From positions 248,001-312,000 of the forward strand of contig MCFH01000009.1 in the NCBI GenBank assembly GCA_002104945.1: a stretch of DNA of 64,000 nt, in the 5' to 3' direction. Each line of letters opens with the position of its first letter. The first letter of the stretch is position 1. The notes beneath the pieces are model-generated. The model worked only from the letters and a program-made list of their open reading frames with translations, did not search any database and was not told where the DNA came from. Shown here piece after piece: positions 14,574 through 17,500 of the stretch. This DNA is from Piromyces finnis finn (Eukaryota > Fungi > Neocallimastigomycota). Made by a program: the position numbers and the translations under genes.

Positions 14574-17500
14574 ATGTCAGAAACAGATAGTAGTAATAAT
14601 ATAAATACTAATAGTGAATTGATAGATCAAGATTCTAAAGCAAATGATATTCAAGATGAAAATAATGAACAAAATTCTATTAATGATGATATTAATACTG
14701 AATTTGAAAATAAAAATTCAACAGAAGATAATAAAAATAATGAAATAGAGTCTGAAAGTCAAACCAGTTACTCTTCTGATAGTTCATATTATTCAGATTC
14801 AGATTCAGATTCAGATTATTCAGATTCAGACAATATTTCATCAGATGAAACAAAAACAATAGAAAACAAAGAATCAAGTGATACTAATATTAATGATGAT
14901 GATAATAATAATAATATAATAGAAGAATCTGAAAAAAACATTAATAATGAAAGCAATACAAATGAAGATATAGAAAATGATAATTTAAATAATAGTGAAG
15001 ATAATGATAACAATAAAGATAATAATGAAGAAGAAAAAGATGAAAAAGAAAAGAATAATAACGAAAATTTAGAACAAGATAATGAAAACCAAGAAAAAAA
15101 TAATAATGAAGAGAACAAAGAGAATAGTAACGAAGAAAATGAAAATACTGAAGAAAATAATTTACATAAAAAAACTAGCAATTCTGAAAAAAAGCATCAT
15201 CATCATCATCATCATAAAAACGATAAATTAAATGATAAAAAGAGTAAAAGAAAACATAAATCAAAAAAAACCTCACAAAGAAATAAGCTTATAGAAATAG
15301 AAGGAGAAAATAAGGAAAACGCACCAAAGTCATATATATCAAATACAGAAAAAGAAAATATGATTTTAAAATATGTTTCAAACTTTAATAGACAATATAC
15401 ACAACAATTTCCAAATAGAAAAAAATTAATGCTATGTCCTGAAAATGAATATGGCATTAAGGTATGCTATTTTAAAAATTCATTATTATAAACTTTCATA
15501 TATATTTTTAACTTATTAAATTGAATTATATGTAACCAATATTTTGAAAATAAGAAATTTGTATGTACTACTATTCGACCAACACAACTTCCTTTTAATG
15601 AAATATATGATTATAATACATGTGCATTGTTCGTAGCAAATTATATTAGATATGAACCATTGGAGCCAAGCCATGAACTAGTAATAATTAATATTAAAAA
15701 TATTAGTATATTTTAATATTAAAAAATTTCACTAATTATATAAATAATTTTCTATTTTTTGTACATATTTTTTTATATAGCCAACAATATTGACATCACC
15801 AACATTTACATTAGAAAAACAAGTTGGTAATTGTTTTGAATGTGCAACACTTTTGGTATCTTTGTTAAGAGGTGTAGGGTATGATGCATATATAGTTTCT
15901 GGATATGCAACGGCAGATGTAACTCTTTTAGATGAATCAAAAGAATATTTTGAACCTCCAGAATCATATATTAAACATGATGATCTCCCAAAACCATTGA
16001 AAATAGTAAAACCAAATAATGATGGTGAAGAAATTTTTAATCCTATTAGTATTGCAGATTCATTTAAAGTATTAAATGAGAATCATGAAAATGAAAAAGA
16101 ATCTAAATATAAAATAAAACCTTCTAAAAAATTTGAAAGCAATTTTCTCAGACTTCAAGCTGAAAAGGAAAAATATCAAGCACAATTAGAATTAGAAAAA
16201 AAACAATTAGAAGAAGAAGAAATTCAGAGAAAAGTATAAATATTGAAATGATGCTCTATATAATAATTAAAATAGAAAAAACCCAATAAATTATCTAATA
16301 TTTTTATAAAATATATATAAATAGAAAGACGAAGAGGAAAACTATGATTTCTTGAGAGGAATGAGAGTTCATGCATGGGTTTTAATTTTACCAGGAAAAA
16401 GAGAAATTTCAGAAGCATTTTTCATTGGTATAATATAATATGTATTATAATCATTTGATTAATAAACTATTTTTTAAATAATATATAAAAATGACATATA
16501 AATTAAATTATTATTGCAATAAAGAACCCAGTACTGGAAAAATTACAGATATTAACGATAATAGATATCTTGGTATTGAAAGTGTATGGTCATCACAAAA
16601 TTATTGGGCTAATATGCAACCATGCTTTAATGGTCTAGATGGGATTTCATTTGATTTAAGTGATAATTTAAAATGGGAATTTTTATTATTAAGTAATTCA
16701 CAGCCATCATATTCATTTGATAAACAAGATGACAAAGCGGATGATCAAGGATCTGACGACGAAGAAAATGAGGAATTAAATTCAAATATATCCTTTTTAT
16801 AAAATTGATAAATTAACTGCTTCATATTTATATAATTAATATTTTTGTAAATTTCTTTAACTTTAATATGTTTTGTAATTAATATATTATTAACACATTT
16901 TGGATCTTCCAAGATCTTGGGTTGACCAATTAGTTATAAGTAAAGAGAAATTTGAATCTGTAACACCATCAGGAAAGAAAACTATAAAATATAATAATGC
17001 TAAATATGTAATAATAATAATAATAATAATAATAATAATAATAATAATAATAATAATAATAATAATAATAATAATAATAATAATAATAATAATAATAATA
17101 ATAATAATAATAATAATAATAATAATAATAATAATAATAATAATAATAATAATAATAATAATAATAATAATAATAATAATAATAATAATAATAATAATAA
17201 TAATAATAATAACTTTAGGAAATATATGCTGATTATTTTAGAAAAGATGGACTTGTTAAACGTATAATATATTTTGCAGATGACAAATATAATTTTAAAG
17301 GGAAAATTCATGAATTTTATTCAAATAGAAGGTTATTACTATTAATGAAAATGAATTTATTTAATTAAATGGAATAATTCATTAAAAATATTTATTATAC
17401 TATTATATTTCTAGTGATAAATTAGTTGAGAGAGTTATTATATCAAATGATGATACAATTATTGAATACTTTCTTCCAGGACGATCACATGGATTAAAAG

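Follow-up and report, generated by a model that had tools for sequence, protein, structure and literature searches.

AT-AC introns of the U12-dependent class, as described for animals and plants, carry a /ATATCCTTT donor, a TCCTTAAC-like branch box and a terminal AC, do not need an AG and depend on the U11, U12, U4atac and U6atac machinery, the optimal distance between branch site and 3' splice site being 11–13 nt (Turunen et al. 2013, PMC3584512). The gut fungus Piromyces finnis has been reported among the fungi possessing both minor introns and minor snRNAs by a survey that classified introns from public annotations (Larue and Roy 2023, PMC10639083). The accessible text of this survey does not mention DRC7, the intron treated here or branch-site spacing, and a per-species intron count or list for P. 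finnis was not found in the accessible part of its supplement. A literature search for DRC7 together with U12 returned no match.

We analyzed a stretch of 64,000 nt of P. finnis DNA with about 20% G+C (the window, G000:C222:248001-312000, to which all positions without a contig name refer). The interval 16788–16896 on the + strand is very probably a U12-dependent AT-AC intron, that is, a substrate of the minor spliceosome, in the gene for DRC7. It resembles the animal and plant introns in its donor, its branch box, its terminal AC and the dispensability of an AG, with the U11, U12, U4atac and U6atac machinery apparently encoded in the same genome. It differs from them in the distance of the box from the 3' splice site, 36 nt versus the optimum of 11–13 nt, in one C-to-T change within the box, which results in a G.U pair with U12, and in its host sequence of only about 20% GC. 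Species and intron class are the same as in the published survey, and the public DRC7 model has the junction. Hence the intron is already contained in the public gene model and its class is already published for P. finnis; mildly unusual are the long branch-to-3' spacing, conserved in three genera, and a distribution that appears to be limited to gut fungi. In agreement with public annotation and literature, the rare second spliceosome would act here on a flagellar gene (zoospore motility) in an anaerobic gut fungus.

The DRC7 gene and removal of the interval

The whole gene was analyzed through its public protein product, P0194 (P. finnis BCR36DRAFT_321219, 1062 aa). When the library was searched with the upstream exon, 229 relatives were obtained, and a word search starting from one of these led to P0194, which aligned to the best-resolved exons with 100% identity and whose ends set the gene at 14574–19164. 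In Pfam, P0194 exceeded the cut-offs for MORN_DRC7 (PF24667, 295 bits) and DRC7_C (PF24671, 120.6 bits) as well as for CEPT76_peptidase (PF24656, 51.6 bits) and Transglut_core (PF01841, 28.3 bits). MORN_DRC7 and DRC7_C follow the transglutaminase/CEP76-peptidase-like region, which is the domain content of a DRC7, and the exon translations also match the transglutaminase-like and CEP76-peptidase-like families. Orthologs are labelled DRC7 (= CCDC135 / FAP50) in UniRef and NCBI. An earlier note on this DNA, made from the sequence alone, had named the gene DRC7, and the two DRC7-specific Pfam matches of the public protein bear this out. The first approximately 250 residues (14574–15300, + strand) form a low-complexity extension rich in N, D, E and S with a His7 run; it is common to other gut fungi and absent from chytrid and animal DRC7. 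The gene and the elements around the interval are:

14574..19164, + strand: DRC7 gene (dynein regulatory complex subunit 7), start to stop codon, from tblastn of P0194 and Pfam
16525..16787, + strand: upstream exon, phase 0, with the acidic linker ...DDEENEELNSN at its end, from the GT..AG joint 16428–16524, contig pieces 16524–16787 in runs X1, X2 and X3, and the open reading frame
16788..16896, + strand: AT-AC intron, very probably U12-type, 109 nt; it is skipped by the transcript contigs, is missing from the public protein and has orthologous counterparts in two sister genera
16788..16796, + strand: 5' splice site ATATCCTTT, a perfect U12-type consensus, conserved in Neocallimastix californiae and Anaeromyces robustus
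16895..16896, + strand: 3' splice site dinucleotide AC, from the sequence and depth arithmetic that places the exon restart at 16897
16897..17007, + strand: downstream exon, starting with ILDLPRSWVDQLV..., phase 0, with a motif conserved in all DRC7 orthologs examined

On the + strand the sequence reads ATATCCTTTTTA from 16788 and closes with ...TATTATTAACAC at 16896. The interval begins with ATATCCTTTT, with the 5' splice site motif /ATATCCTT(T) placed at 16788, and ends in ...TTAACAC; it contains only 5 G, is 87% A+T and, as previously noted, measures 109 nt, terminates in AC (16895–96) and is free of AG. The open reading frame entering from upstream (16491–16802) reads ...DDQGSDDEENEELNSN and meets a TAA five codons inside the interval, and the frame is open again from 16897 with ILDLPRSWVDQLVISKEKFESV. 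Removal of the interval joins ...EENEELNSN in frame to ILDLPRSWV..., the local translation being ...DDEENEELNSN/ILDLPRSWVDQLV... with phase 0 on both flanks (a slash marks the junction), so the expected in-frame connection of the acidic linker to the conserved (L/F)D(L/M)PxSWV motif was indeed found. Since the intron and the following exon both start with AT, the exact cut is ambiguous by 2 nt, and of the possible registers only AT..AC shows known splice signals. Both boundaries lie between codons, and the coordinates and description in the earlier note are therefore correct.

Removal from RNA was assessed with four public runs (X1–X4) from this organism, which contain about 57% of the words of 15400–17010 and whose contigs were aligned on 11300–17005. 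As the contigs align with 0 mismatches and contain many GT..AG joints, they represent spliced RNA. In X1, X2 and X3 the contig piece that starts at the 16524 acceptor stops exactly at 16787. The X1 contig has a depth of 14.1, and its bins 16648–16838 and 16839–17005 read 10.3 and 9.19; these values correspond to 140/191 and 109/167 covered positions, hence coverage halts at 16787 and restarts at 16897. The joint 16787/16897 is not among the joints listed, and the junction TCAAAT/ATTTTGGAT, which had been proposed as a check, is supported indirectly, though tightly, by the piece ends together with the depth. The public protein P0194 reads ...EENEELNSNILDLPRSWV..., also given as ...EENEELNSNILDLPRSWVDQL..., at this place and carries the junction, and therefore the public gene model already excises exactly 16788–16896. 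NSN/ILDLP is also found in four relatives of P0194. The interval is thus excised from RNA at these boundaries and with a terminal AC, as seen from piece ends, depth, the public protein and, as shown below, the cDNA of N. californiae.

Other explanations of the interrupted frame would be a nearby GT/GC-AG pair, an assembly insertion or a retained and translated segment, none of them an intron at these boundaries; we give them hardly any weight at all. The GT donor and AG acceptor closest to the interval (16693 and 16912–13, 221 nt) are out of phase, which agrees with the earlier note. Farther out, 18 in-frame GT/GC...AG combinations do exist within about 200 nt, but each of the 18 would remove conserved residues, among them the LDLP of ILDLPRSWV; two retain only SWV of this motif. 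Read-through is stopped by the TAA after 5 codons. The ends of the contig pieces at 16787, the sequence NSN/ILDLP in the public protein and its four relatives, and the cDNA of N. californiae, which proves the same splice, all speak against such boundaries and for removal of 16788–16896.

The downstream exon is followed by a further intron with an unusual composition:

17008..17218, + strand: next DRC7 intron, GT..AG, nearly all (TAA)68, with boundaries predicted from the sequence and KY/EIYADY in relatives

The repeat is perfect and occupies 17009–17212. Canonical GT..AG splicing of 17008–17218 would give KY/EIYADY, the sequence also seen in N. californiae, in A. robustus and in two metatranscript relatives. 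KYVIYADY, which the public P. finnis protein shows at this position, needs non-canonical boundaries at about 17011–17221 and is probably a small error of the public model.

Orthologous introns in gut fungi and the DRC7 linker elsewhere

The genomic sequence of N. californiae (L005) has AATTCAAAT/ATATCCTTTTATTAT...TTATTAATAC/ATCTTGGATC at the junction codon of DRC7, enclosing a 100-nt intron of the ATATCC...AC type that runs from ATATCCTTTT to TTAATAC. An intronless 3.7-kb contig of a JGI metatranscriptome (L007), which encodes the same protein, reads AATTCAAATATCTTGGATC and joins AATTCAAAT/ATCTTGGATC. Comparison of cDNA and genomic DNA in N. californiae consequently shows an AT-AC splice at the same codon as in P. 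finnis. At this codon A. robustus (L008) has ATATCCTTTAAT...AATAACAC, a 116-nt sequence ending in ...AACAC. Both sister genera share the donor ATATCCTTTT unchanged.

An intron at the NSN/ILDLP codon is absent in the five early-diverging fungi examined, namely Spizellomyces punctatus, Gonapodya prolifera, Allomyces javanicus, Rozella allomycis and Cladochytrium replicatum. In oyster, jellyfish and a bird the acidic linker of DRC7, directly ahead of the (L/F/V)D(L/M)PPSWV motif, is likewise interrupted by a phase-0 intron. In contrast to the gut-fungal intron it is GT-AG with a pyrimidine tract, hence U2-type, and lies 6–9 codons upstream, which makes it different in both position and type. Position conservation in DRC7 orthologs, suggested as a check in the earlier note, is consequently confirmed for three gut-fungal genera and fails for the five other fungi and the three animals. 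We rejected an ancient conserved U12 position for these sampled taxa. Given its absence from the five fungi and three animals, the AT-AC intron may be specific to gut fungi, a pattern that, with this sampling, would be compatible with gain as well as with repeated loss.

The putative branch box and its distance to the 3' splice site

The earlier note had also mentioned a U12-like branch box, and such a box is present:

16854..16861, + strand: branch-site-like box TCTTTAAC, complementary to the U12 segment GAGUAAGGA with one G.U pair; putative branch A at 16860

The box thus resembles TCCTTAAC and is complementary to the U12 of the same species. The 5' region of this U12 reads UUGCCUCAAAUUAAUGAGUAAGGAUAAUAAC (...AUGAGUAAGGAUAAU), and its GAGUAAGGA is able to pair with UCUUUAACU of the intron (16854–62) in a duplex that contains a single G.U pair and leaves the second A bulged. 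By sequence complementarity, this predicted pairing has the classical branch-site geometry. U12 branch boxes usually lie 10–20 nt from the 3' end. The putative branch A at 16860 precedes the end of the intron by 36 nt, longer than this and roughly three times farther than the animal-defined optimum of 11–13 nt, a short spacing being typical for the class and not strictly defining. A T(C/T)TT(T)AAC box is retained in all three genera, 29 nt from the 3' end in N. californiae, 32 nt in A. robustus and 36 nt in P. finnis, and the intervening sequence has diverged.

We also assessed the occurrence of donor and box throughout the genome (56.46 Mb, 232 contigs). In the AT-rich window ATATCCTT alone is not rarer than expected by chance, with 10 matches versus 6.6 expected, and GTATCCTT occurs 3 times versus 1.6; ATATCCTT was rejected as a stand-alone signal. 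Genome-wide, ATATCCTTT followed by TCYTTAAC within 20–80 nt gave 33 matches (L143–L175) versus 5 for the reversed-pattern control, an enrichment of about 6-fold. The signal is therefore donor and branch box in combination. Both the DRC7 intron and a sequence at 11596 in the neighboring gene are among the 33 loci. The latter is a second AT-AC candidate (11596–11712, + strand), reading ATATCCTTTTT...TCTTTAAC (11677–84)...ATAC in phase 0; the distance from branch to 3' end is 29 nt, and the flanking frames stay open for 31 and 46 codons. A pair of minor introns within 5.2 kb of each other in neighboring genes would be above the expectation from their genome-wide density.

The spacing was surveyed roughly in 16 putative AT-AC introns, with each 3' end set at the first AC that leaves a frame of 30 or more open codons on either side. 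With 3' ends assigned from open frames in this way, the distances were 11, 11, 11, 11, 13, 13, 13, 13, 18, 23, 24, 24, 29, 29, 30 and 36 nt. Canonical and long distances each make up about half, the DRC7 intron having the longest. With a perfect TCCTTAAC box the AC assigned from the open frame is mostly 11–13 nt away, and the TCTTTAAC variant tends to distances of 23–36 nt.

Branching might instead occur at a degenerate, A-rich site 8–20 nt from the 3' end of an intron that is still U12-type, for instance at GTAATTAATAT (about 16876–16886), the upstream TCTTTAAC box then being fortuitous or serving recruitment only. This would agree with the optimum of 11–13 nt and with the mostly short distances of perfect TCCTTAAC boxes as opposed to the 23–36 nt of TCTTTAAC boxes, both measured to ORF-inferred ends. 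We nevertheless consider it unlikely, as the T(C/T)TT(T)AAC box recurs at 29, 32 and 36 nt in three genera in spite of the diverged spacer, the proximal stretch lacks good complementarity to U12, and donor and box co-occur about 6-fold above control. RNAduplex calculations with U12 chose the distal box in the DRC7 intron of A. robustus and in the neighboring-gene intron 11596–11712, not in the other two introns; for the DRC7 intron of P. finnis the best U12 duplex was located on the 5' splice site.

The intron could be a lineage-specific minor intron, not an inherited one, that was gained or converted in the stem of the Neocallimastigomycota, and gut fungi may also tolerate U12 branch sites about 30–36 nt from the 3' splice site. 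We put this forward tentatively and regard it as doubtful rather than probable; it is based on the shared codon in three genera, the lack of the intron in five other fungi, the three animals with no more than a U2-type intron 6–9 codons away, and the spacings of 18–36 nt in about half of the 16 sampled introns. If true, the spacing rule defined in animals would be relaxed in gut fungi. Together with the other cases in the genome, the intron may provide a natural test set for the distance strictness of the minor spliceosome and for the gain of minor introns.

Minor-spliceosome snRNAs and the assignment of the intron class

An Rfam search of the 64,000-nt window gave no match. In the P. finnis genome U12 (66.6 bits, cut-off 53) and U6atac (52.1 bits, cut-off 33) scored above their cut-offs, and U11 (38.2 bits, cut-off 39) and U4atac (49.2 bits, cut-off 53) were found as candidates just below. 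Judged by these scores, the genome encodes the minor-spliceosome snRNAs U12 and U6atac and has candidates for U11 and U4atac. One of the genes has an unusual pairing box:

G000:C112:211500-211648 (= L002:1501-1649), + strand: U6atac, the only such gene in the assembly, with GCCGA, not AAGGA, in the box that pairs with the 5' splice site

The U6atac of P. finnis reads AUGAGCCGAGAGA where most species have AUGAAAGGAGAGA, and the 5' splice sites remain ATATCCTTT despite the GCCGA box. A canonical copy was not found in the genome: TATGAAAGGAGAGA occurred at control level, and the 8 of its 26 matches that were examined had no Rfam match. The pattern of the internal stem-loop is unique in the genome, and BLAST of the gene returned a single copy. 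The suspicion of a 'broken' U6atac, raised by the GCCGA, was dropped, since GCCGA corresponds to the '[GU]CCGA CC variant' reported for cnidarians, Physarum, oomycetes and others, which likewise takes the place of the AAGGA of most species (Lopez, Rosenblad and Samuelsson 2008, PMC2396436). The accessible text of that study names among fungi only R. oryzae and P. blakesleeanus, both with AAGGA, and gut fungi are not in its sample. A first pattern scan of metagenomes for U6atac gave no match. A second scan returned 119 loci, mostly chance matches of a 16-mer, with one true U6atac, again a CC variant; L043, a locus of human-gut metagenome origin, went no further than the motif filter and was left unused. 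The true U6atac is located on a metagenome contig with 54% GC (L108:1660-1781, + strand), scores 72.8 bits, has the same GAGCCGAGAGA box and derives from an unrelated, GC-richer eukaryote.

AT-AC introns can also be spliced by the major spliceosome. Such U2-type AT-AC introns are rare, and their donors are U2-like, with AT followed by the consensus of GT-AG introns. That the DRC7 intron belongs to this existing class is very improbable, for its donor ATATCCTTT is a perfect U12 consensus conserved in three genera, a U12-complementary box is present and the genome contains minor snRNA genes. From splice signals and snRNA genes we infer the use of the minor spliceosome. The assignment as an AT-AC intron of the U12 type, central to the earlier note, is accordingly supported by the perfect donor, the snRNA genes, the transcript contigs, the public protein and the cDNA of N. 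californiae.

In the U12-dependent pathway U11 and subsequently U6atac would recognize the ATATCCTTT 5' splice site. U12 snRNA would pair with TCTTTAAC at 16854–61 and bulge A16860 as the branch point. The boundary is found at the AC of 16895–96, which follows the box as the first AC in frame and would be chosen as 3' splice site. Excision connects the acidic linker with ILDLPRSWV in phase 0.

Two observations concern the candidate snRNA genes. The 5' end of the U4atac candidate (L004:1501-1629), AGCGUCCUUAUCUUUGGGA, is complementary by eye to CCCCUAGAUAAGGACGG of U6atac; two differences from human are each offset by a change in the partner strand, which suggests that the U4atac and U6atac genes are functional. 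About 550 nt from the U11 candidate (L003:1501-1615) there is a match to a SNORD14-like C/D box snoRNA (L003:2162-2325, − strand, on G000:C152) with 52 bits, below the cut-off of 64.
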